This document shows, one piece after another, positions 652-62,273 of a DNA stretch of 64,000 nt (position 1 is its first letter; each line of letters starts with the position of its first letter). This DNA is from Takakia lepidozioides (taxonomy: Eukaryota > Plantae > Bryophyta). The translations under genes were made by a program, and so were the position numbers. A model generated the notes under the pieces. The model was not told where the DNA came from. It saw only the letters and a program-made list of their open reading frames with translations, and made no database searches. The stretch is taken from the NCBI GenBank assembly GCA_030704615.1, contig CM060731.1, forward strand, positions 24,180,001-24,244,000. The letters are read 5' to 3'.

Positions 652-1844
652 CGCAAGCAGTACCAAAGCAAATGGCTTGTGAGGAACACAACCACAGGGC
701 GAAACCATGCTTGCTCAACTCAAGACATAATGATTGCTCCAACTGTTAAACTAGTGAGAACCTCATTTTGAATTGCTGGAGTGCAGAATGCTGTCTGGCA
801 GAATGCATTTCATTAGTGGTTGTTAATTGGGTTCCACAATGGACACAAGTCACCAGCACGTAGATTTGTTCTCTGATGATGAAATCTTATCTCTCCACTG
901 TCTGCCTGTACTCTCATTGTACTTATCTCTAGAGGGTGCCAGCTTTTGTGCAATCTTAGTTCATGCTCAGTACCGGGTGGCTTGAGCACAACCTTCCTTT
1001 TTGGCTTTAAAACAAACATTAGACTTGGTAGTAGAAGTAGAGCCTTTCATTTGAAGATGGCAATCGTTCATGATCTCTTGTGGCGCTTGATTGAGTGGTG
1101 GTGTAATAACTTACATGTGATCTAAAGAACAGTCCTACATTTCAAGTCCAATGCAAATCTGAGATAAAATTGATTGTGCTGCTATTTATGTACCTCTTCC
1201 ATGTAACAGTGTAGTGAACTATCACAGGCCTTTTTACTGTCACTCACTTGGCTGCAGCTGAGGCCCACCTCAACAAAGCACCTGCAAACAAAGCTGTTGC
1301 ATGCTCAAATCGCTGTAACTTGCAGTACTAACCCAGATGGCAGAAAATAACTAAGCCTATTGCCAAAAGTTGGAACCCCACATATAAGTTTACCTGCCAA
1401 GCTGTAACAAACTTAAATGAAGCGTACAATACCACTGCAAATGACACTAACAGGTGTGGATAGGCATTGGGCTGGGATGTGGACGATTGAGCACCTGGGG
1501 GCTCACACCTCATTTCTGCCATCCCTTAGGAAGAGGCTTCTTTTCCATTATGTTTAGCTCCGTGGAGTTTGCCTCAAAAGCTCTTAAGTTCAATGTTAGG
1601 AAATCCAGATTTAGGGTGCACATTTTTCCTTGGTCAGCGGATTGGGGGCCCAAACTGGGTGTTACTTGTAAACCTAGGGTGATTGCGCTTCCTTACCTTC
1701 CGGGCAACTATTTGTGCTCTTTGCCTGAGATAGGGGCTCACTTTGGTGCTTACATTGGTTCCATGAATGTCAATGACTTTGAAGATGCGGACCACTTAAG
1801 TATTGACTCTGATGGTCATTTGGACCCGACCTGGGATTCGGGGA

Positions 1845-1990
1845 AATGTTCCTCACGGCTTTTCCCTAGTAGCAATGCAAAGGGCTAGAAAAGGCTCCCC
1901 ACAGCGAAACAGATGGTTTAGGAATCTGGGTAAATATTCCTCACAGCTTTTCCCTAGTAAGCATGCAGAGGGGCAATAAAGGCTACCACA
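1845..1990. repeat. Two-copy direct repeat (~88 bp period)
   Basis: ttcctcacggcttttccctagtagcaatgcaaagggc versus ttcctcacagcttttccctagtaagcatgcagagggg. Confidence 0.7.
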
Positions 1991-4951
1991 TGGTTCATTT
2001 TCCCGCAAAGAAAGGCAGCCTTGCCAATTGAGAAGGAACTTATAGCATGCTATCACCCTCGCTATGTCGTCTTTTCACCCCATGCATTGCAATACCATCC
2101 CTGTTTCCATACAAGCACATTCACCCCTGAGCGTTGGTCACTTGCGGTAAAAGTATTATTCCTTTTGGTGCCATCCACAAGCCATAGTGAAAGATAGAAA
2201 TTTCTTATCTCAAGCTATTCTTTACTTTAAGATAAATGTGAAACATAAAAAAGTCTGGAAAATAGGAAAGGAGAGAACATACAGGTAGGTATCATCAACA
2301 GGATTGGCCATAAGAGTGTCAAGGGAGACGCGCTCTGCTTCTATTTCCCCTTGCGTTCCCACTTCTTGTTTCTGCACCAGCATGTACAAGTTTCAACAAA
2401 TGATGCAATTTGGTGTGCCAACCAATTTACCAATTTTGAATTGAGCTTTCTAATTGAGGTGCAAGAGGAACTCACTCGTCCTGCAGGCCAGGATTTCGAC
2501 GATATTTCAGCTTGTGATCAATGCGTTTCACATTTGCTTCCACATCCTGCACCTGTTTTATCTAAGACGAGCCGACATGTTTACCTTGAAGGGGGGACAG
2601 ATAATCTTACCATGCACACAAAGACAAAGACATATGAAGGCATGTTGTAAAATTGTCTACATGTACATTAAGGCAGCAGGTAACTAAGTTAGATGCATCT
2701 TTTGCATGACCCACAGCCTGTATCCAACACACATGTTTTGTTTGCCACAGGGAAGCTACCATCAGAAATTGTAAATTAAGCATAAGCCCACCAACTAGTT
2801 CACAGCATACCTCCCATCATGAGCCCTGAACATACCAATGAATCTATGGAATCAAGGACACAGATCAACTCATTATATGAATGCTGCTATATGTTGGCGT
2901 TCCTGAAGATTTGCCAAGTATCTGAAAATGGAGTGATAAATTGTACAGATAAGTAACACAGCTTCTCTACTGATGCTCACCAACCTTAACAAGAAACTAC
3001 ATTCTCTTGGGTCCAACTGTGATTTCAGTGTGGGCGGCCTGAAGACAGTATCCATTCTCTTATACAATGTCCAGGGTTTCTCATGAGAGAGCAACCCTCT
3101 TCAGGACCATCAAGAACATAGTTCCTGCACCTCTGTTCACCAACTTTCAAAATCTCAAGGCTCAGCCTAAAGGCCCGGCCCTGTTGGGCAGATCAGACAG
3201 ATGAGATTTGATCCTTGTGTGAAGGGCTTTCTGGAGGAAATCTGGAAACCGAGAAAATTGTTTCTGCCATGCTAAATCCCACTACTGGATTGAGCCCCTC
3301 ACAAAAGGTAGTGTCTGTTCCCTTTTGTTCCACCCAAACTGACCATGGGGTCTATGGCCACAAGGCTACGGAAAACATCTTATGAGTACACATCCTCGGT
3401 GTTGTTTACAGGGTACACGGGTCCTCTAAACCTCTCATGGACATGATAAACTTCTTCATCTTCTCTCCTTAATGTTCCTAGATATATGTATCAGGTGAAA
3501 TATTTCAAAAGTTTGTTAGTGACCAAAGGGGGTTGAGAGTGAAATACCGGTCCAAATCCACCTAGTGCTCTTCTTGGTTCACAGTCCGCAGCGCTGCCAA
3601 AGCTAGCTTCAGATGCAAGACCAACAATCTGTCAGGAGGAGCTAACTATAGCAAATGCTTTCCACACTGCCACAAGATCATTTGACTTGATAATCAGAAA
3701 GCCTCCAGCACAATGGACTCTTTTACTACGATTGGCTTTCCAGTGCTGAGCACACTATGGGTTTCAAAGCTGTACACTAGAGATTATATTTTGCTTTCCA
3801 AAGCCCCCAACAGAGTTTCAGAAACCAATTTTCTTTCCAAACTTAAGATCCACTCTCTATCTTTCAGGCCCATTCTCTTAAGCTAGCCTTGGTCCACTAG
3901 TCCCATCTTCAAAAGCTACGGCAAACAACGTCTCCTGAATACATTCTCATCTTCAAGAATGCAGTGCCAACCTGGCCTGGAGGAAAGAGAAGAAGTGCAT
4001 CTGTCTGCATCATGGGATCCACCACAAATCAAGCTACGTCTTGCAATTCCTGTGGAAAACAAAGGCATGGTTATGGTGAAAACTCTGCCCTCAGCACGAG
4101 AAAACCTTATCTTGACATTTGAGCCTGACATCTGACAATCTACTCAAATTACCAACAGACAATGTACAGAGAGAGGAACAATTCCCTAGGACAGCAAGCA
4201 CACTTTAATGTCCAATTCAATCATCCCTAATAGGAATTGCTGTAGGAACTCTCAAGTCCAACCCACATGCCAACAGTCATTACCAGAATTGACATGGCTC
4301 AAGCAAGCTCAAATCCTTGTGTCCTCTGTAGTTCTACTTCTGCTTCTTGTTACCAGAAGGCTTAAGCCCACTACATGTGACAGAGACCACCAAACAGAAT
4401 AGAGTAGCAATTCTAGTCTACATGGACTTTATGTACCTGCAGACCTCGTACAGCTGCTGCCCCCTTGCACAAAATTCTGCAGGAACATGTACAACCAAAT
4501 ACTTCAAAACAACCCTCAAATCTGCCAACTGGCTGTTGGAAGAGCTTGCAGTGAGGCTCAATTTGCATCTGTGTATGTATGTGTGAGGGAGAAGAAGAAG
4601 AAAACTTATCATGGCCACAGATGCTCAAAGGGGCTATGGTACCAAAGTTAATACTCCAAATGAGTTCTCTGAACGGACATCAAAGCTGGATGAGAAGAGC
4701 TGCTAATGTTCCAAATAGCATGACATATACTAAGTGTGCATTCAACAGACAAGAGCTTGGCAGGTGGCAAAGAGCAGAAGTGCAGAGTACACACTGAACT
4801 CTGCGAAGTTCTTGTTACAAACAAAACTCCTCACAGGCAGCTCACTGGGCAGAATGCCATCTATCCGGACCATTTTATAGCACAAAAAATCATGATAAAT
4901 GAACTTCTGTACTACCAGCCTTGTTTTGAGGTGACTCTCTTCACGCTTGTT

Positions 4952-21466: not shown

Positions 21467-22332
21467 CCTCTGAAATTTTGGTGTCATAATTAGTATAATA
21501 GGCGAGCCATGTCTGAAAACAATAAATTGATCAAACAAGCATAAATTACTGTATTGTTTCATCTAAATTAAAGCTAACTTTTCAAAGTGAACATCTTCTA
21601 GCTGTCACAATCAATGCAATGCGGTTGTCCAAGAGGTTCAACACGTGGTTGTAATCAATTACATCCAACATGCATCTATAGATTATCATTATATAAATTG
21701 GATGACGTATTAATTGTCAAGGGGGTCCATGATACAATTGAGATATCATTATGTTTAAAACATGATTGATGTTATAGTTCGAGTCAAAACGTCAATATTG
21801 ACAAGTTTAATCATTTAATTGAAATTTCATTGAATCGGACACATAAGCAAACAGACTGCACATACACTTTAAATTTTAGTTTATTAAAATATTATATTGT
21901 TCTTCTTATAATTAATTATTAACATTGGTAACTCTTTGGCACACAAAATTAATATTGTCAACACACAATTAGCAATGTTGTTGGACCTCTGAAATTTTGA
22001 TCAAGTGTCGGTATGGTAATGCTAGCAATGTTGTCGGACCTCTGAAATTTTGGTGTCATAATTAGTACAATAGGTGAGCCATCTCTGAAAACAAAAACTT
22101 GGTAAAACAAGCATAAATTATTGTATTGTTTCATCTATATTAAAGCTAACTATTCAAGTGAGCATTTTCTAGTTGTCACAATCAATGCAATGCGGTTGTC
22201 CCATTTCCCCCCATACAAAAGTCCTCATATATCTTTATATAGGAGGTTCTAGGTCAACACATGGTTGTGAATTACATCCAACATACATCTATAAATTACA
22301 TTCAACATGCATGATCTGTAGATTATCATTAC
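21467..22332. repeat. AT-rich direct repeat, two copies (~21467-21690 and ~22039-22332)
   Basis: cctctgaaattttggtgtcataattagta...caatcaatgcaatgcggttgtcc repeated with high identity. Confidence 0.85.
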
Positions 22333-22339
22333 TAGCGTA

Positions 22340-22868
22340 GCTTGTACCGTTGGCCCAAGTGTCAAGTGTCCTCTAAGCCCAAGTGTAGATCTTCTATGTA
22401 TCCTAGTGCCTCTCCTACGTCGAGGCCCAAGTGTGACCTCTAGGGTAGCATGTGCCGTTGGCCCAAGTGTCCAGTGTCATCTAAGCCCAAGTGCAATCTC
22501 CTATGTATCCAAGTGCGTCTCCTATGTCGAGGCCCAAGTGCGACCTCTATGGTAGCATGTGCCGTTGGGCCAAGTGTCCAGTGTCATCTAAGCCCAAGTG
22601 CAAGATTTCATATGTATCTATGTATCCCAGGTTGTCTCTTATGTTGAGGCCCAAGTGGGACCTCTAGGGGGGCCTATGCCGTTGGCCCATGTGTGAAGAA
22701 TTGAAATCTAAGACCCAGTGCATCTCCTATGTCGAGGCCCAAGTACGACCTCTAGTGTAGCCTATGTCGTTGGCCCATGTGTGAAGAATTGATATACAAT
22801 AAGACCAAGTGTAATTTTCTCTATGTCCAAGGGCGTCTCCCATATGCATCTCCTATATCGAGGCCCAT
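22340..22868. repeat. Tandem minisatellite built on GGCCCAAGTG subunits (~105 bp higher-order unit); related copy at 35045-35175
   Basis: Repeated gccgttggcccaagtgtccagtgtcatctaagcccaagtg...gaggcccaagtg. Confidence 0.85.
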
Positions 22869-23885
22869 CTATGGTTCGATGGTGGCCAAGACGGTGACAC
22901 CTGGAGGGAGTTGTAGTAGTGTGTGAGGGTTGTCAGGCGACCTTAGATGTGTGAGTACAAGGATTGTGAGGGCAGAGGGGGAGAAATGAACGATAGTGCG
23001 TGCCCATTGGAAAGCTTCTTGGATGATAAGGCCTGGTGGCGGATGGGCAAGGCCTTTGCCATACCATTTATGTTGGGTGGCAAGTCTAGTGGCTCCAAAT
23101 GTGCAGTCTCTAGGGTGGGGGCTGATATATGAGGAAAGCTCCAAAGAGCAAGTGAGTGGGCTTGAGTAGTAAGAGTGGGTGAGTTGGAACGAAGTAATGA
23201 GGGATTTGAGCATATTTGGGGGGATGGCAATGTGTGCATATGCTTGTGTTTGTCTATTGGTGGATTGTGGTTTCTTGGGGGGGGGGGGGTATTTCGGAGA
23301 TAACGCTCTAAGAAGAGCCAACAGATCTCTGTACGTAGCAAAATCCTATCGGGGTGGTTGCAGCTGGCATGTGCTTGAGGCTGAGGCTAGGTAGTTATTC
23401 CATAGTCAGGCGATTCGGTCGTTGGGAATTAGGCCGAGGTATCGGCCGTTAATGGCATAGATATTGGTCATGATATGGAAGGCAGAGCATATTATGGGGG
23501 AGTCGTGCATATTATCTTTGTCGGGATTACATTCAGTAATGGATATGTGTATGTTGGGGGCAGCTAACGGGTTGTGGATGTAGTGGGCGTCCGTGAGTTT
23601 GGTTTGGGAAGTATGTTGTTGGTGGATGTGCATGAGGTAGTTGGTGCTAGTATGTTTGTGGAATGCAGTGAGTAGGGCGAGATTATGAGCGGGTTCACAA
23701 TCGTCATGTGAGCCAAAAAGATCTTTTTCGGTTTGCCATGTATTATTGTCCGATGGGAAGCCAGCCCATTTGCATTAGTAATATGCGTCGAGCAAGTAGC
23801 CCCGAATGAGTCGATTGAGGAATGGGTTTTAACTCCAAGGATATAGCTTCAATGACAAAGGCATTGGGGTTATCGAGAGTTACCT
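22869..23885 (-). mobile_element. LINE fragment (copy 1): chromodomain plus PCIF1-like methyltransferase region
   Basis: CKWAGFPSDNTWQTEKDL (chromo), ITECNPDKD, FQLTHSYYSSPLTC..HPRDCTFGA..WYGKGLAHPP. Homologous to 41700-42560 and 57682-58880. Confidence 0.75.
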
Positions 23886-23980
23886 CAAATTACCTCAGGT
23901 GACATCTGGCTCATTGTTATTATAAATAAAGGCATTCAACGGCCGAAGTGGTGAACTTCAGCAGCTGAAGTGCGACATTC

Positions 23981-24018
<38 letters not shown>

Positions 24019-40480: not shown

Positions 40481-40824
40481 CATTTTTGAATTATTTTTTA
40501 ATAATATTTTTAATTTTAGTAAATCAAATTATAAATTATAAAATTTAGATTATTAATTGATTTAAATTCTTCATTATATTTTTGGGAAAATATAATGGAA
40601 GGCCAACGGGGCTTGTACAAGTCTTATAAATCAATATTACAAAATTCCAAATTGGACAAGCATCCCCATGGATGCCTCAAACTCTAATGCGGAGCAAAAA
40701 TTAAGCAAACCGACACAAGGGCAGAAGTCTTTTAGTACTACTATAGTTCTGGTATATTACAATGAAGGACTCTATTTGCAACTATCGAATGCAATATTCC
40801 TTACAATTGCATTTGGCCAACAAC

Positions 40825-40920
40825 TCCGAAACAAACTTGGTGGCAGTGTGGCAGTCACCACACACCCGAAGATTCTTCACAAGATGGAGAGACATCCCTG
40901 CAGCTCATCAGCCCAAAACC
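40825..40920 (-). pseudogene. DYW domain fragment of a PPR gene
   Basis: GFGLMS..GMSLHLVKNLRVCGDCHTATKFVS; DNA similar to 5047-5135. Confidence 0.85.
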
Positions 40921-41444
40921 TCAATTGTCCCACCATTGACTGGGGTCAGAAAAGTTCCACAGCTTCTCCTCGTCTCTGTTACCTGTTTTTTGATACTTTC
41001 TTGTTGTCACGTTGGCAATTTTATGTCAAAGTCACTCCAAACTATCAAAGGTTCACTCAACCAGCTAATTTGCAGAATTCATAATGAAAATTGAGGGTCG
41101 ATTCTGATAAGAGGGAAAAACGGGGTGAAATGTGTTGAAGAATGTGCATTGATTAACAGTGCCTGATTTGATCAATTGTGTCGTTGCTGCTGCGGCTTCT
41201 AATTGACCATCTATCCATGCACAAATCATGCATACATCCTCGCCTTACTGCTAGCAGCTGACAATGATAGCCTAGAATTGTTCCAGCAAACACCCCGACC
41301 CTACTTATCACACTAGTTCATATGCTCAATTGCATCTGCTACTCTCTATAATCCAACAGGCGTTCACGTTCTTGCCTCGATTGTCCCACCATTGACTGGG
41401 TTAGAAAAGTATTCATTCCACAGCTTTTCCTCGTCATTTGCCCC

Positions 41445-42800
41445 TAGGTAAGTGAAGATGTAGTATGGGGGGGAGCGTCAAGTAGAGAGAGAGCGTCGTG
41501 GATGGACATGAGCTCAGAATGGTGGCAGGGCCAGGGAGCCGGAGGGAAATACTCCGACCGTTGCCGGTGTGATAAATTCCATATCCTACATTAGGTTTGG
41601 TGAGGGATCCATCAGTGTAGTGTGAGTTTGTCGGGGGATACTTGAGGGTGGTGTTTTGTTGATATATGGAGGGGATTGGGGGAAGGGGGGTTGCTGGTAT
41701 TACTTGGGGGGGGCGCGGTTATGCCATGCCCAGGCTTTGTTTGTTTTGACCCGGGGAAATGTGGTGGCTACGTGGGTGTGGAGGGGTGTAGCTGGGTAAT
41801 TGATGGTGACCTTCATTTTATGAGTTATGGTTAGCAACTGGTCTAGCTGGTGGAAAAAAGGTGTCGGTATGTTTGTATGAAGGGGGTTTTGGACATGTAG
41901 AATCAGAGTTATGGTAGGTTCTTTCCTCTTGAGATACTTGGGAAGAGGGGGGGTATGAGCGTACTTAAGCTGATTTGGGTCAATTGTGGCGAGTAGATTG
42001 ACCCCTTCCGGGAGTCGTAGGAGAGGGTGGGGGGTGCTAGGTGTATTTTGCTGTGTGAGGATGAGGATTGTGGAGGCAAGAAGAGAGGAGTGTGCTGCGA
42101 ATCTTGCCCATTGGAGAGCTTCATAAGCAAGAGGGCCAGAGGGGGGGTGGGCAAAGCCTTTACCCTCCCAGGTATGTTGGGTAGCATTACCGGTAGCTCC
42201 AAAGAGACAATCCCTGTGGTGCGGGCTGGAAAATGTGTGCAAGTCCATAGGACATGTCAGTGGATTGGAATAATATGAGTGAGTAAGCTCGAATGTATGG
42301 ATAAGCAAGGCGAGAATATCTTGGGGTATGGCATGGTGTGCGCATGCCATTTCTAGTCGGGTGAGGGATCGTGGCTTCTTGGGGGGGGTGTCTTTGAGGT
42401 AGCAGTCTACGAGCCAATATAATTCGGTCGCGAAGTCTTGTTTTGGGGGTTGTAAAGATTGTGGGTATGAGTTTGCAACATAATACTTCTCCCACAACCA
42501 TGTTAATCTGTTATTAGGAATGAGTCCAATGAAGCGGCCGTGTTGAGCGTAAATATTGGAAAGGGTTTAGGCATATGAGATAATCAGGGGGCTGGAACCG
42601 ACGCCATAGCAGTCTGTAGGGAGTTGGGTAAGAGCATTAGGAGAACTGGACCATAGGTTAAAGCGGCGGTTGAGGTGTTGGAGTTTGTGAGCTAGGATAG
42701 CTAGGTCGTCAGCGTATGCGGCAGCAAAGATTTCACTAGGGGGAGGTTTTATAATGATAGCTGAGATTGCCGCGTTCTAACCATCTTAGTAGTGGTTCTA
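41445..42800 (-). mobile_element. RandI/Dualen-like LINE fragment (copy 2): RT core, internal deletion, PCIF1-like domain, RNase H
   Basis: EPLLRWL at ~42778-42798, AYADDL at ~42705-42716, ORF 41700-42497 (MTase-like), then HYTDGS..VGYGIY RNase H at ~41575-41620. Confidence 0.8.
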
Positions 42801-43039
42801 ATTTGGGTTTTTGGGTCTTTGGCTCTTAGGGTTTTACGGGTTACATAGTTTAGTTTAGGGTTAGTTATAATATAGTTAGTTTAGGATTAGCTGCAATATA
42901 GTTTTGTTTTTAGGGTTTTGTTTTTTTGTGGGATGGGGACATATGGCTTTACGTTTGTAGGGTTTTCTTTTTCAAGTTTTTCCAAGGGTTGGGAGTGTAA
43001 CTCTTCCGGAGGTTATAGTGGGTCACAATACGGTACTCT

Positions 43040-52469: not shown

Positions 52470-55104
52470 CTAGAGCATGGAACGCGATGATCGCAGGATG
52501 TGCAGGGGCGTGGGATGGAGGCTTTGCAGACCTATTCTTGAGCAAATGATGCAAGAAGGGGCGAGGATAGGCACAGCGAGGCACTACAACACACTATGGT
52601 TTTCAGCACCGTCGGTATTTCACTATGAATTTCACTGTTTGCCACATTTCACTATTTCTAGCACCACGTAGTGAAATGTGTTGATATTAATAAAACAATT
52701 CACTACAACTATCAAAAGTTTCATTACAGAGTCCTTTATTCTACCACCCCTAAGTCAAACATTGACAGCTGTAATTCTGAAAATATAATTGATAATATAT
52801 ATTTCAATTTCAATAACTCAAAGTGAAAGTTTCTACTATAACTTTACTAAAGTGTTCAAACCAGCCCAATGGTAATATATTTTACTACCACTATCAAATG
52901 TTTGTCTACATGGTGTTTTGGTTTCCTAGACAAGCCTGGTAGGAGGATTTTAGCCTCTTACCTAGAATGAATCAAAGTGCAAAAGGTTAAAAAGTCAAAA
53001 AATTGCTAATAAGGTTGCCCATTAGGGTAATCGTGAACACAGAGGAGGGCTGGGACTTGGCGTTTTTTTGTCTCCTTCGCCACACCATGTAGCCGAGGGA
53101 TGGAATGCGATGATAGAGGATATGCAGGGGCGTGGGATGGAGGCGTTGAGCAAATGATGCGGGAAGGAGAAGAAGAGGAGGAGATGAGACGAGGATAAGC
53201 TCGCCGTTCTTGGGAGAGTCAGCTTGGTCTTAGTAGACCGTGTTTCAATCTCTGCCTACTCAGCTGCACCGTGGTGGTTCGATCTCACAGACCAATCCGA
53301 CATTACCTGACTACAGACACAAGCAGCACACACAAGAGGTCTTTTTGGGTTGATGGTCAGTCAAGTCATGACACAAGCTCAAGGACAATGTGGTGAGGGC
53401 ACCTTCTTCTTTGACCTATTTCAGCCTGTTTTGCCATCTCACATCATGTTTGTGTGCATTGCAATGCTTGTGCAAGCCTGGCAGCCCTTGAGAAGGGCAA
53501 AGAGGTGCATGGGGATATCATCGAAGCTGGAATTGTACCTAATGTTATTCTAAACACTGCCCTGGCAGCTCTGGAAAAGGGGAAGGAGGTCCATGGTGAC
53601 ATCTTTCAGAGCTGGAATTGTACCAAATGTCATTCTAACAATACCCTAGTGGACATGTATGCAAAATGTGGGTGCATCGAGGATGCAAATGGAGTGTTCA
53701 ACACTATGGCTGAACGAGATGTGGTATCGTGGAGTGTGATGCTTGCGGGGTATGCACAACAGGGACGTGGGATGGAGGCTTTGGAGACCTATGAGCAAAT
53801 GATGGGGGAAGGGGTTCAGCCCGACCACATCATGTTTGTGTGCATTGCAGGCCTGGCAGCCTTGATTTAAATCAGGCGCCTCAACCATGACCACAACTTC
53901 TAAAAGAGGATCAAGAGAGGGAGTCCATAATGCCTCTTCTGGCTCTTCTGGGCATGTGAAGATTCTTTGTGAGGCAGGCAGACTGAAAGAGGCTCTACAA
54001 CCTTTAAAGCAAGGAGCATTTCAGCAGATTCAGATATGTATGTCTGTCTCTTGCTTAAGTGCATCAAAATGAAGGGTCTGGAAGCTGGAAAGCAGGTGCA
54101 CACTCACATTATCCAAAGTGGATTCACGCCAAGTGTTTTTCTCCTCAACACCTTGTGAACATGTATGTTAAGTGCAGGAGCATCATGAATGCACACCGAG
54201 TGTTCAACGGAATGCCTCAACGAACTTTGATCATGTTGAATATAATGTTGGCAGGATTTAACATGGGTGTGGTAGGAATGCTTTGGAGACCTACAAAGCA
54301 AATGTTGCGCGAAGGGCCGGTGAAGCCCAACCACATCACCTTTGTTGGTGTTTGCAATGCGTGTGCAAGCCTGGGAGCCCTAGAAAAGGGGAAAGAGGTC
54401 CATGCTGACATCGTCAAAGCTGGAATTGTACCAAATGTCATCCTAAACTGACAGGTTTGCCAAATGTGGGTGCATTCAGGATGCGAAGGGAGTATTTCAC
54501 ACTCTGGCTGAACGAGATGTGGTGTCGTGGAATGCGATGCTTGCAGGGTATGCACATCAGGGGCACGGGATGGAGGCTTTGGAGACCTATGAGCAAATGA
54601 TGTGGGAAGGGTGAAGCCCGACCACATCAGGTTTGTGTGCGTTTGCAGTGCGTGTGCAAGCCTGGCAGCCTTGGAAAAGGGCAAAGAGGTGCATGGTTGC
54701 ATCGCCAAAGCTAGAGTTGTACCAGATGTGATTCCCTGTGGATCAATAGCTACAAGAAAAACTGCATGGGTAGATGGTCAACTAAAGGCTGCAGCTACAG
54801 CGGCATAGTTTATAATACCAGGCACCTCAACCATGACCACAGCTTCTGAAAGAGGATCAAGAGAGGGAGTCCACAATGCCTCTTTTGGCTGCACTTCTAG
54901 GCATGTGAAGATGCTTTGTGGCAGGCAGACTGACAGAGGCTCTATAGACTTTTGACCAATGAGGCATTTTAGCAGATTCAGGTACGTATGTCTGTCTCTT
55001 GCTTAAGTGCATCAAGATTGAAGGTCTGGAAGCTGGAAAGCAGGTGCACACTCACATTATCCAAAGCGGATTCATGCCAAATGTTTTTCTACTCAACACC
55101 CTAA
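52470..55104 (+). pseudogene. Cluster of PLS PPR pseudogene fragments, including two duplicated N-termini (~53873 and ~54819)
   Basis: LCEAGRLKEAL (cf. LCKAGQLKEAL of the intact gene); repeated CNACASLAALEKGKEVHG, DMYAKCG, RDVVSW motifs with frameshifts and stops. Confidence 0.9.
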
Positions 55105-55109
55105 GTGCG

Positions 55110-55288
55110 GGAGCATCATAGATGCTCTAAACTCTCAAATTATTTCTGGCTAACCAAAGCTACCACTGACGCACAAATCCGACAAACACTCAAATTCAGA
55201 TACGCCCAATACATGGGTCACCAGCGCAAACACATCTTTTGGCCGCATATGTTCCCATCTCCATACTGCCCATTATGTTCAACCATTT
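55110..55288 (+). mobile_element. LINE C-terminal zinc-finger region fragment
   Basis: SNYFW...QTLKFRYAQYMG..KHIFWP..YCPLC, resembling the CCHC-preceding region of LINE ORF2. Confidence 0.55.
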
Positions 55289-55644
55289 TGTGAAACCCCC
55301 GTGGACAGCTACAGAAGTATATATAAGGGGAGTAGTGACCCCGAGAACGGTGCAAGCCCGTTTGGTTAAAAACTAGTGAGTAAGTGAGCGAGCCGGAAAG
55401 CGACCCGGAAAGCGACCAAAGAGTGGGGAGCTGTTCCGGACTGCCATCTACCAAAGGGAATTCTCCTAGGCCCAAATAGGTGGAGGGTTTAGTGGGAAGC
55501 GAAGGGGGACCGTTATGTCCCGGTGAGCAGCCGAAGCTCCAAGTTGGCCCGGGCGGCCAGGTTGGGAGTCAGGCGCACGCATCAAAGCGAGTAACTATGA
55601 CTTGAAGGGGAGCTTACCGAAGTGAGGTGCGCGACAATATCACA
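55289..55644. mobile_element. Solo LTR-like sequence
   Basis: TGTGA...TCACA inverted termini and an internal TATATAA box. Flanks (cattt / gctgg) are not a TSD. Confidence 0.6.
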
Positions 55645-57448: not shown

Positions 57449-57487
<39 letters not shown>

Positions 57488-57662: not shown

Positions 57663-60600
57663 TTAGGACCTCCCAGACCTCATGTACGCATGGCTGTGCA
57701 CCCCACCCACATCCACTCCCCTACATCCTCTCCCCACTCAGACATGGACTCCATCCACACCCCCCCCGGCTCACCTCCATACGCCCTCCCTTACGCAAAC
57801 TACTTCCACCCCCGCTCCGGCCTCTTCCCCCTCATGCTCATCCGGTACTCTCGCAACTCACCATGCTAACCCAGATAACCCGGACGCATATGTTTTTGAC
57901 GCCATCCTAGGTATTAAAACTCAAACATCTACAGACTCATATGGGGCCACATATGTTGATAAATATTACCTCTGCCAATGGGCTGGCTTCACAGCTGATG
58001 ATAATTCATGGAAAATCGAGGACGACCTCTTTGGCTCACGTGACGACTGTGACCCCGCCCACAATCTCATACTCCTCACCGCATTCCACAAACGCACTAA
58101 CACTAACTACCTTATGCATACCCACCAACAACATATCTCCCAAAACCAACCCAAAGATGTCCGTCACGTACACCAACCGCTTACCGCTCCCAACATACAC
58201 ATACACATCACTGAATGCAACCCGGATAAGGACATCCTGCACACCTCCCCCACAATTTGTCAAGGCCCTCGTATGTCCACCATCTACACCTTCAATGGTC
58301 GTTTCCTCAGCCTCATTTCCAATGACAGACTAGCATGGCTCTGGGCCAAATACTCTACTTCCTCCCCCTGTGACACTCTAATCCACCCACCCCGCCAAGA
58401 CTTTGCTACCAAACTCAGCTGGCTTGCTACCCGCTACCTCCAAGATACCCCTGCCAAAAAACCCCGTTCCCTGACAAAACAGTCACAAGTCTTTGTTCAT
58501 AATACTATCCCCCGGGATATTTTCTCTCTGCTCATAACCACTTTCCAACTTACTCATTCATATTATTCCAGTCCACTTACATGCCTGATGGGTATCACAA
58601 CTTTTATCTGCCCCCACCCTCGAGACTGCATTTTTGGCGCCACCGGACATGCCACCCAGCGCGCATGGGCGGGGAGTGGACTTGCCTACCCCCCCTCAGG
58701 CCCCTCATGCATGAGGCCCTTCAATGGGCCCGTATAGCCGCACAATCCTCCCCATCAAACGTTACGATCTTGTTACAATCCTTCTACTCACTCATCAAAA
58801 GCTACCCAACAGTCCCCACCCCTCCCTACAATTCCCACCCGGCGTAACACTTCTCGCCGCTATCGAACCAAATATCCAAAATGTCATAGTTAACAAGAAG
58901 TAGGTAATTCTAGTTAACCATGACTAAAACCATGACAACTGTCGTGCACCTAAGCATCGTGCAACAACATACATCGCTGTCCATCACACATCCTAAGCAT
59001 ACAATCCTAGAAAGCTATGCCACAATCGCCCCCCTAGTTGGTGATTAGGTCCCTCTAACACCAGATAGCTGACAAGTATCCACCCTAATAAGATCACTGC
59101 TCGGTCTTCAATCGCACAAGTCCCAGTATCTGAAATCAATAGATCAAGAGGCCGGGTACAAAAGTAGCCTCATCGTTACTCGCCTTCCTACAATCCATGG
59201 CTTCAATTGGGTGTCCATGGCATTGAACTCTCGTTAGCTAGACCTTTGGATCACTAGTCAACCTCGCCACTGTCATGCCCAACTACCTTTGTCCAAGGCA
59301 TTGTGGACACAACCATTCTCCACTATGAACCTCCTCAAGTGGCGGTATCAAGCATCCCATGTGCTACCCCCTTGAGCATTTGTTACACACCAACATGGTC
59401 GCGGCACCACCAGCATGCCCATATAGCATGCAATGCAACCCTACAGGTACCATTGCAAGGTTGGGATCTATCCTCCCATCCACATGTGGAAGGTGACATG
59501 GCACACAATTGCGCACATGGTCCTTCCATACCATGCCATCTAGAATCAACATTCCTGAAGGCAACACCTCCCGGACCCTTAGAATCACACGACCTGCTGT
59601 GACATCCAAGGTCGTAGGCGCTGTCTGCTGCAGATACACATAGTTCCCAAGATGGAAATGCCGAACACCTGGCCGATATCCCCCTTCCCGTATAGTGGCG
59701 TACCTCAATGTGTCTCGGTGTTGGGCAATAGCAAGGTTCTCAAAAGCCATAGGCATGACTCTCTTGAACAACTCTGCCCGTTGGGCACATTCTTGTGTCC
59801 ACACATCCGGATCATCAAGGTTGAGGACTACTGTAGTCTCCCTGCGAATAGATGCAGACAAATCTGGCTCTCGGCCAAAGAGAAAGAAATAAGGCGAGAA
59901 CGAGGCAAGTGATGCTTGCTTGCTAAACCTGTAACCCATGGCCAACCAAGGTAGCTGAAGGTCCTAATCTCCCAAGTGTCCATTCTGCAAGCCATACTTG
60001 CGCAAGCCTTGCTTGACTATTTGCACAACCCTCTCGGCCAAGCCATCAGCCTCGGGATGATCCCGAGAAGTAGTGCAGTGATTTATCAAGGCTTGGTCAC
60101 ACAAAGCCTGAAACTCCCCCAAGAACTCTCTCCCCTGGTCTGTGAGTACCTCGGCTGGAGCACCAAATTGGCTAAGCACTCGATCTAAGAATGCATACGC
60201 AGCCCCATCACTTGCCTAGTCAGGCAATGCCACCAGTTCAATCCATTTGGAGAATATTCCACTATCACCAACACATACTTGTTATGGCGAATCGTTAGTG
60301 GTAATGGGGCCTGCAAAGTCAAGACTCCAACGATAGCCCAAACCCATAATGGGTAAATGATGTAATTATGGAGTAGGTGCATTGAAAGAAGCCCGCACTC
60401 TATCATACACCATGCACCTTGTCACTAAGTGTTGCACATCCGTGTGCATGCCCCGCCACCAATACTGTCCTTGCAGCAAACTATGAGTGCGCCGCATCCC
60501 AAAATGTCCCAACTCCTCATGGGCATGGCGTACCAATCACGCTCATTGTGTTGGATGAGGCACAATCCTCACTCGTCCATCATCCCATACTCGGAGTAGG

Positions 60601-62273
60601 TGAGTCCCATCCCACTTGAATCTCTTGGCTCGTTGTAGGATCCGATCTCTCTCCTTAGCAGTCACACTGGCTGCTGTCTTTCTAGTACAAAGGTAGGCCA
60701 ACACTGCTGCATCTTCATGTACATCCTTAGTACCACCAAGCTCCTTACTGATCTTTGGATCGTCATGCACACTATCTCTATGACCAATTGCATGGGATGG
60801 ACCAGCTTGAGCTCCCATTGCTAGAATGCATAAAAAGGCAGATGCGTACTATCCTGGCACCATCTCCTCGTCCGTCTCACCATGCCAACGAGCTCTTGTA
60901 TCATCAAGCTCACTTGTGCATGGATTGCGACTCAATCCATCCGCATCCTGGTTGACTATTCCGGCTCGATGCACCACCTAGAAGTTGTACTCTTGAAGCA
61001 TAAGTGCCCACCGTGCAAGCTTCTATGTAAGCTTGTCTGACTCCATCAACCACTTCAATGGTTGGTGATTCGTGACAAGGGTGAAGAGATTGCCATAGAG
61101 GTAGCATTTAAAATGTGCCACTGCCCATACTGCAGCTAGACACTCCTCTTCATAGGAACTATACTTCGCCTCAACATCATTGTTCGAGCGGCTAGCATAT
61201 GCCACTACAAACTCTCTTCCCTCATCATCCACCTGTGTGAGCACTGCTCCAATCCCCAACATATTCCAATCCGTATGTAGCTAGAAAGACCGCCCCCGAA
61301 TAGGCCGCCTCAGAATAGGCGCAGAAGTCAATCGAGCCTTGAGTTCCTCAAAGGCTTCCTCCTGCTTTTCCTCCCACTGCCACTCCTGACCCACCTTGGT
61401 CAACTTGGTAAGAGCTTTTGCAATGCTGCTAAATCCCTTGACAAACCGTCGATAGTAGTTTGCCAACCCCATGAAAAGCACGAACTCTGCTAACATCGAT
61501 AGGGCGTGGAATGCGTGCAATGGCCTCCATCTACTCCCCGCCTGACAACTCCACCAATCCAGCTTCGATCAACTCCATAGTCCGTGGCTAGATCAAAGAC
61601 CTCTTCATATCACTATACCTGTAGGTTCTTCGAAAAATTGGCGTGTCACTTGCCAAATCAATACGAATCTCCTGGCCCTTCAAACTCCCCAAATCCTTCA
61701 AAACGAAGGCAAAGCAATTTCTATAAGCCCTTAGAACTCGTTGGATCCTCCGCCTCTCTCCTCTGGTGACTGTAGGTCCAACATCTGGTTCCCAGTTGTC
61801 CTCAGTGACTGTAACCTTGGGTACACCAGGCTTGGAAGTAGGAGACGCATCCTTTGGTTGCTAGATAACAACCTTTTGGGTTTTATCTGCCCACCCTGAC
61901 CGTGGCGTAGCCTCCACTTGCTCCGCCTACCTTGAGAACATCCTCTGGGGAAGAAACATTCTCAACCTCTTCAAAAACATTGGTCACCTTGGCCTCCAAC
62001 TGATTCTCAATGTATGGCTCTCCCCACTCCTCATACTGCTGCTTGAGAGATCCAATGACTCTCTCTTTGCGCATCTCATCCCACATCTGCCATAGGTGTT
62101 TGCACCCCATGGTCCTGTGCTCGCCCCCACTCACTGCCTCCACCGTCCCGGTTGGCAGAGATGGTGTAATATCCAATGGAAGTGCAGACGTAGCCACCAA
62201 TGCTTGCAATCTCCGTTGCTCAGCCATGCACAAGCCAATAACCCATGTTGAGATCCATTGCCTGACCCAACAC

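Follow-up and report, generated by a model that had tools for sequence, protein, structure and literature searches.

What does a domain related to a cap methyltransferase do within a retrotransposon, and does it still act as an enzyme there? This question is raised by a locus in the genome of the moss Takakia lepidozioides, which we analysed within a stretch of 64,000 nucleotides (nt; contig CM060731.1 of assembly GCA_030704615.1, positions 24,180,001 to 24,244,000 of the forward strand), called the window in the following. The locus contains remains of a long interspersed nuclear element (LINE), including a chromodomain and a domain similar to PCIF1/CAPAM, the cap-specific writer of N6,2'-O-dimethyladenosine (m6Am); it is the third of three such copies in the window and is named copy 3. 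Retrotransposons rarely carry chromatin or RNA-modification modules. Known cases are the DNA methyltransferases of algal and dinoflagellate long terminal repeat (LTR) elements, the chromodomains of chromoviruses, and the PCIF1-like domain of DIRS1; such cases are informative on how mobile elements choose their targets or evade silencing. All window copies of the LINE are dead, and the stretch under study is transposon debris rather than a plant gene. In our view, copy 3 is probably a dead, truncated copy of a Dualen/RandI LINE, the conserved PCIF1-like domain of which serves as a non-catalytic binding module.

Three decayed copies, their PCIF1-like domain and its chromatin reader

Copy 3 (57757..58886, plus strand) is a fragment of the open reading frame (ORF) of a Dualen-type LINE, which is cut at both ends and consists of a Pro/Thr-rich linker, a chromodomain (57886..58035) and a PCIF1/CAPAM-like domain with a methyltransferase fold (58282..58886). 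According to tblastn, residues 106-422 of the relative P0161 cover 57757-58692, and P0017 covers 57847-58752. Two frameshifts, near 58700 and near 58785, interrupt the reading frame. The initial annotation had let this copy begin at position 57682, where an ATG lies; the copy is indeed present in this region, but it starts at or before 57757 and not at that ATG. On the minus strand, copy 1 (22872..23889) carries the same chromodomain and PCIF1-like module, as detected by blastn, Pfam and translation, and is damaged by one frameshift and by in-frame stops at 23408-23346. Copy 2 (41509..42801, minus strand; tblastn and translation) is composed of a reverse transcriptase (RT) stub, an internal deletion, a PCIF1-like domain, a linker and the start of an RNase H. 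Its PCIF1-like domain (42566-41877) is complete and in frame; it lies within one frame of 288 codons, and the element is cut on both sides of it. A blastn comparison aligned 57874-58870 of copy 3 with 23874-22872 of copy 1 (67% nt identity, E 6e-81) and 58396-58873 with 42440-41973 of copy 2 (67% nt identity, E 2e-30). The shared module has a length of about 1 kb, and the amino acid identity among the three copies is 55-62%. Both the relatedness of the copies and the protein motifs by which they had originally been recognised were thus found again in the blastn alignments and the translations.

Compared singly with the Pfam family PCIF1_WW (PF12237), each copy reached an E-value between 1.5e-4 and 3.2e-4 (1.7e-4 for copy 3) at 21-22 bits, which is below the gathering score of 31.1 bits. 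Four relatives exceed this cut-off: P0161 with 47.8 bits, P0101 with 35.9, P0151 with 35.4 and P0049 with 32.8. An exhaustive HMMER search with copy 2 gave 185 relatives, among them 63 at E <= 1e-10. When copy 2 alone was compared with the PDB sequences by means of phmmer, no match was found and a profile was needed. A profile of 30 family members, searched against all PDB sequences, had PCIF1 as its sole match (zebrafish 6irx, E 3.6e-9; human 6irv, E 6.8e-7), and in the profile alignment 'aHPp' of the family is positioned on 'ANPPF' of PCIF1.

The structural comparison with PCIF1 that the initial annotation had suggested was performed with copy 2, which thereby also provides the fold evidence for copy 3. 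Folding copy 2 without an alignment resulted in an unusable model with a predicted local distance difference test (pLDDT) score of 39.6; instead, an alignment of 30 sequences was used, and the AlphaFold model of 42566-41703 reached a pLDDT of 85.2 and a predicted template modelling score (pTM) of 0.81. With this model as a query, the best six Foldseek matches were all CAPAM/PCIF1 (E 5e-9 to 2e-7, template modelling scores 0.52-0.60), whereas the next fold followed at E 1.5e-4. VIA-align superimposed 220 residues on human CAPAM 426-668 with a Z-score of 18.7 and a root-mean-square deviation of 3.6 Å; the next match had a Z-score of 8.3. A further indicator comes from the ESM-Atlas, where 30 of 30 feature matches were PCIF1_WW clusters. 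By profile, fold and language-model features, the domain is established as a true homologue of the PCIF1/CAPAM methyltransferase domain, just as the initial annotation had supposed. The structural match is confined to that domain, the helical cap-binding domain being outside the aligned region, and no WW domain was found in any Pfam scan of copies or relatives. The PCIF1-like domain is hence a descendant of the methyltransferase domain of PCIF1/CAPAM, with the WW and the helical domains missing.

The nearest ESM-Atlas clusters consist of short PCIF1_WW proteins of 195-270 amino acids, whose annotated members belong mostly to Nucleocytoviricota and haptophytes. PCIF1-like domains may thus also occur on their own among the giant viruses that infect algae.

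The chromodomain upstream of the PCIF1-like domain, which had been noticed in copies 1 and 3, was detected in both by Pfam Chromo (PF00385), at sub-threshold values of E 7e-4 for copy 1 and 2.2e-3 for copy 3. P0001, the closest database homologue for the chromodomain, scored 36.6 bits at a cut-off of 25.1. All 26 of the 26 PDB sequences matched by the corresponding stretch of copy 3 are chromodomains, the best one being Chp1 (3g7l, E 4.5e-3). By alignment, the positions of the aromatic cage (Tyr/Phe, Trp, Phe) are present in the chromodomain copies; in copy 3 these three are the Tyr of AYVFD and the Trp and Phe of CQWAGF. In GC-rich relatives, which are presumably of algal or protist origin, a PHD finger is found in place of the chromodomain. 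Directly before the PCIF1-like domain, the presence of a chromatin reader is thus a stable feature, only the type of reader being exchanged.

Architecture and class of the element

Judged from overlapping sequences, the intact polyprotein would have contained, in this order, an apurinic/apyrimidinic endonuclease (APE), an RT, a chromodomain (a PHD finger in the algal-type kin), the PCIF1-like domain, an RNase H, a CCHC knuckle and an R2-type restriction-like endonuclease (RLE). P0153, a single ORF on contig L004, comprises RVT_1 at residues 383-668, PHD at 1201-1249 and PCIF1_WW from 1443 onwards; just upstream of RVT_1, L004 has an Exo_endo_phos (APE) match above the cut-off (E 6e-10). The plant-type relative P0167 likewise combines RVT_1 and PCIF1_WW in one ORF. 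On contig L007, the order is APE-like, RT, chromo-like, PCIF1_WW and RNase H, with weak APE matches (E 9e-4 and 6e-3). Among the long relatives, the PCIF1-like domain is followed by RNase H in 10 of 10 cases, including P0002, P0115, P0141 and P0161. These data agree with the initial proposal of a non-LTR element in which the domain precedes RNase H and shares one ORF with RT: P0153 and P0167 have both in the same frame and not in separate ones.

In the region after RNase H, the positions C, C, H, C, Arg-His (RH(D/N)), Pro-Asp and Lys are invariant. Neither Pfam nor a single-sequence PDB search recognised the C-terminal endonuclease; a profile of seven sequences was needed, which matched R2 RLE structures (9nl3, E 8.3e-7; 9dou, E 1.4e-6). 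No tyrosine recombinase was matched in the relatives by Pfam and profile scans. The combination of APE and RLE is the published hallmark of Dualen/RandI LINEs (PMC9977147, PMC5029228). Since the relatives carry both, the carrier is assigned to the Dualen/RandI-type non-LTR retrotransposons, an assignment that is based on domain order and is a probable one.

In the window, copy 2 is the only place where the domain was said to be linked with RT (YADD) and RNase H (YTDGS). Both do flank the domain, yet merely as stubs. The RT stub (42801-42648, minus strand; YADD at 42716-42705) shares 70% identity with P0167 across one block of 20 residues, after which YADD follows. The RNase H stub (41685-41509, minus strand; YTDGS at 41619-41605) comprises the first 45-60 codons. 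Pfam did not recognise either stub, whereas tblastn with plant-type relatives matched both. An internal deletion of about 480 codons has brought RT motif 5 almost next to the PCIF1-like domain and has eliminated the chromodomain. An APE of this LINE family was not found within the 64-kb window.

Two further observations were made on the contigs of relatives. On L007, an ORF just upstream of the APE domain (1255-2160, plus strand) holds a 2A-like ribosome-skipping motif, Asp-Ile-Glu-Ser-Asn-Pro-Gly-Pro; for APE-type non-LTR elements, such motifs are reported (PMC3708506). The contig of P0115 (ENA ERZ1426764, 11569 nt) has an ORF of 2629 residues directly before an ORF of 1123 residues, in which the PCIF1-like domain, RNase H and RLE are found. 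The coding capacity of algal-type elements may therefore exceed 3700 residues.

Lost catalytic residues and the competing explanations

Motif mapping located the catalytic region of copy 3 on the plus strand: motif I at 58552-58581, an Arg-Asp..Phe-Gly motif at 58621-58641, and a degenerate motif IV, in which AYPP replaces NPPF, at 58684-58695. In the other two copies, both read on the minus strand, motif IV is AHPP (23048-23037 in copy 1 and 42152-42141 in copy 2). The motif NPPF corresponds to Asn553 to Phe556 in PCIF1, and in each window copy AHPP or AYPP is followed by a deletion of one residue. In the three window copies as well as in every plant-type relative, the Asn is exchanged for His (for Tyr in copy 3) and the aromatic fourth residue is deleted. 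The HPP and YPP variants, which had been flagged at the outset as a sign that activity might be altered or lost, are confirmed, and the damage extends to the aromatic residue. The same sequences have replaced the motif-I Glu by Ser. In the alignment, this position is that of the Glu in the PCIF1 stretch Glu-Cys-Phe-Ala-Ser-Pro-Leu; by analogy with M.TaqI-type enzymes we take this residue to contact S-adenosylmethionine. The Asn position is variable across 30 relatives, and nine different residues (H, Y, F, N, T, S, R, C and I) occupy it in the family. A position that varies so freely does not behave like a catalytic residue. Nearly invariant in the family are the neighbouring Pro of motif IV, the Ser-Pro-Leu (SPL) loop and the Asp-x-x-Phe-Gly motif. 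Judging from the aligned motifs, the family shows a graded loss, ranging from near-canonical to degenerate.

For PCIF1 itself, the consequences of such changes are known. The exchange N553A alone inactivates the human enzyme (PMC9178792), and mutations of NPPF inactivate CAPAM in vivo and in vitro; the helical domain of CAPAM helps to build the cap pocket together with the methyltransferase domain (PMC8287941). In the fly, a Phe-to-His change in Pcif1 accompanies the absence of m6Am (PMC9479742). Because the Asn is lost, the aromatic residue is deleted, the motif-I Glu has become Ser and the cap-binding helical domain is absent, we predict that the PCIF1-like domain is most likely a non-catalytic binding module. 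On the same grounds, and in view of the variable Asn position, the initial idea that the domain methylates the element's own RNA or complementary DNA (cDNA) is unsupported.

We propose that the domain, placed between RT and RNase H, would act as a non-catalytic scaffold: while target-primed reverse transcription proceeds, it would hold either a nucleic acid, be it the RNA template or single-stranded DNA, or a protein partner or host factor, and the neighbouring chromodomain may tether the complex to chromatin marked by methyl-lysine, thus biasing where copies land. The domain was kept by purifying selection as long as the lineages of the element were active. Whereas homology, fold, domain order, motif loss, selection signature and decay are observations, the binding role and the chromatin targeting are what we infer. 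For the PCIF1-clade domain of DIRS1 elements, which is inactive, Iyer, Zhang and Aravind proposed a non-catalytic role of this kind (PMC4738411). In Chlamydomonas, an enrichment of Dualen LINEs is known for regions that are putatively centromeric (PMC9940879); by analogy, this enrichment would fit a targeted insertion, as circumstantial evidence.

The divergence of the copies is in line with such a conservation. Nei-Gojobori counts gave proportions of synonymous differences (pS) of 0.60-0.76 and of non-synonymous differences (pN) of 0.23-0.27 between copies; for copies 1 and 3, 65% of the synonymous sites differ, compared to 23% of the non-synonymous ones. The copies have diverged under purifying selection, the direction being clear and the ratio rough. 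Most of the differences accumulated in lineages with a constrained protein, among families of the element that were active, rather than through the decay of a single insertion. Copies 1 and 3 share a further property: to within about 3 nt, their homology ends at the same position, behind the Ile-Glu-Pro(-Asn) codons, where a stop codon is present in both. In contrast, copy 2 and all relatives read on in frame past this point into a conserved stretch, which is followed by RNase H. No significant homology was found downstream of the end of copy 3 at 58886, that is, beyond the common break of copies 1 and 3. A match at 58914-59045, noticed by eye, was rejected, as the homology search did not support it.

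Several points weigh against the interpretation as a non-catalytic module of a Dualen/RandI LINE. The full architecture was stitched together from overlapping relatives, which are 73-80% identical in the shared domain, and from one ORF map; APE and RLE never occur together on one sequenced molecule; and the probable Dualen class is read from the domain content. Owing to saturation at synonymous sites, the dN/dS value of about 0.2-0.3 is rough. Nor does the interpretation account for the 3' break that copies 1 and 3 have in common. With regard to catalysis, the SPL loop is nearly invariant, as is the Asp in RD..FG, so that a cofactor or nucleotide may still be bound. Moreover, the distant relatives P0101, P0084 and P0133 keep the motif-I Glu and a motif IV of the form N-P-E-Y or x-P-P-[FY], P0101 combining NPEY with the Glu. 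Judged by these residues, activity may exist in part of the family, among the near-canonical relatives, and a His at the Asn position could in principle still form a hydrogen bond to the target amino group. These relatives also allow for a bolder scenario, to which we assign a low probability: the reader and the PCIF1-like domain would be a working unit in active members, motif-keeping relatives would methylate adenine in element RNA or nascent cDNA at chromatin chosen by the reader, and the plant lineage would represent a later pseudo-enzyme stage. If true, these transposons would encode an epigenetic or epitranscriptomic writer of their own.

The common break suggests another explanation, namely that copies 1 and 3 go back to a shortened coding unit of its own, in which the chromodomain was joined to a PCIF1-like domain truncated behind the IEP(N) codons; this unit could be a domesticated host gene family or a 3'-shortened sublineage, retained by selection in its own right. 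The coincidence of the two ends and of their stop codons speaks for it, and so does the divergence: since copies 1 and 3 diverged under selection, a neutral duplicate of one broken fragment cannot account for the common break. However, both copies contain frameshifts and stops, their 5' ends differ, and an inspection of the break as an exon-like boundary revealed no convincing splice signals. In addition, the Rossmann sheet loses its last strand at the break, so that this strand is absent from the domain of copy 3, and, as stated, copy 2 and every database relative continue in frame. We consider such a unit quite unlikely; a recurrent breakpoint, a 3'-shortened sublineage and chance are possible causes of the break.

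That the domain is an active adenine N6-methyltransferase, which marks the element's RNA (at a cap-adjacent or internal A) or its cDNA, is very doubtful. It is true that the Rossmann core, which is predicted well, has an active m6Am writer as its nearest match, that the domain combines two nearly invariant motifs with purifying selection and has near-canonical distant relatives such as P0101, and that PCIF1 also methylates single-stranded DNA in vitro (PMC9178792). Against this stand the three losses common to the window copies and all plant-type relatives, the variability at a position where a single exchange kills PCIF1, and the missing helical part of the cap pocket. Finally, it is scarcely credible that the copies belong to a DIRS1-type (tyrosine-recombinase) retrotransposon, although inactive PCIF1-clade domains in DIRS1 polyproteins are published (PMC4738411): here, the domain is located before RNase H and not after it, an APE precedes the RT, the RT carries YADD with LINE-type surrounding motifs, and the C-terminus consists of CCHC and an R2-type RLE (E 8e-7) instead of a tyrosine recombinase.

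The surroundings of the copies contain further features. A run of 37 T (T37) is located at 57451-57487, 270 nt 5' of copy 3, and T29 on the plus strand at 23983-24011, which reads as A29 in the direction of copy 1 and lies 95 nt 5' of that copy. Twin priming would be compatible with the run upstream of copy 3, but not with copy 1. About 60 nt past the 3' break of copy 1, a tandem array (22332-22811) has periods of 107 and 88 bp with 3.3 and 1.9 copies and 84-85% matches. The segment 56570-57660 is full of a short dispersed GC-rich motif (GCGACGCC..GGACGTC). On the strand opposite to copy 3, about 320 nt past its 3' break, lies the integrase of an LTR retrotransposon (59205-60980, minus strand), with Integrase_H2C2 at 60366-60536 (E 5e-14) and the rve core at 59964-60179. 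The integrase ends in a PHD-like finger (59286-59420; the finger proper is 400 nt from the break), which resembles the PHD of algal-type LINEs (P0152, E 2e-5; P0153, E 2e-4). A fourth scrap of the LINE (55105..55290, plus strand) represents the stretch between RNase H and CCHC/RLE and is 56% identical to residues 437-491 of P0002; it adjoins a gene with pentatricopeptide repeats (PPR), at the end of an array of PPR genes at 53502-55118 (plus strand). A decayed fragment of a DYW-type deaminase with a Cys-x-Asp-Cys-His motif is found at 40785-41030 (minus strand). A PPR-DYW gene was also found with the relatives, on the contig encoding P0167 and beside a close relative of the LINE on contig L006. 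The PPR and DYW-type sequences, both there and in the window, are in keeping with a land-plant genome.

Comparison with known systems

With cellular PCIF1/CAPAM (PDB 6IRV, 6IRX), the LINE domain has in common the methyltransferase fold, the SPL loop, the Asp..Phe-Gly motif and the Pro-Pro of motif IV. The cellular protein possesses WW and helical cap-binding domains and an intact NPPF, whereas the LINE domain has neither of the two, its NPPF is degenerate, and it is part of a transposon polyprotein. The Pcif1 of Drosophila, reported to be catalytically dead (Pandey et al. 2020, cited in PMC9479742), resembles it in being retained despite a damaged NPPF, which implies a non-catalytic role; as far as this secondary account goes, the Phe is the sole residue altered in the fly protein, which still has its WW domain and a role in the cell, while the LINE domain loses Asn and Phe.

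Chromoviruses also encode a chromodomain with an intact aromatic cage, at the integrase C-termini of Ty3/gypsy elements. There, the chromodomain is part of the integrase; here, it occurs in a LINE between RT and RNase H, with no integrase fusion. The chromodomain of chromoviruses directs integration to marked chromatin. The LINE family is a testable candidate for chromatin-guided LINE integration.

Dualen LINEs are reportedly the subject of a study by Kojima and Fujiwara from 2005. Dualen/RandI elements, known from green algae and protists, agree with the family in combining APE, RT, RNase H, a CCHC knuckle and a restriction-like endonuclease in one polyprotein (PMC5029228, PMC9977147). As extras, the published domain lists that were consulted name SET, C48 peptidase, a Josephin-type protease and PHD; neither a PCIF1-like domain nor a chromodomain is among them. 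Unlike the published elements, the copies described here reside in a land-plant genome. In the literature, many subscription papers and Repbase reports being outside the coverage, neither a PCIF1-like domain nor a chromodomain was found to be described for Dualen elements or any other LINEs. The initial annotation had considered the architecture undescribed in land plants; this stands for LINEs and for the combination with a chromodomain, but an inactive PCIF1-derived domain as such is known from DIRS1 (PMC4738411).

The family thus offers a LINE lineage that reaches land plants and has a histone-mark reader beside a PCIF1-derived domain, conserved despite a lost catalytic motif; with its graded motif series, one can ask why an m6Am writer is retained once it is dead. 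The closest parallel is the methyltransferase-like domain of DIRS1 (PMC4738411), which is likewise PCIF1-derived and part of a retrotransposon polyprotein, and which was judged inactive from substitutions at catalytic and substrate-binding positions, with a binding or mimicry role being proposed. DIRS1 is a tyrosine-recombinase element with the domain after RNase H; in contrast, the carrier described here is a LINE with APE and RLE, whose domain follows RT, precedes RNase H and has a chromodomain or PHD reader as its partner. The LINEs are a second, apparently undescribed host class of a probable PCIF1-like pseudo-enzyme.

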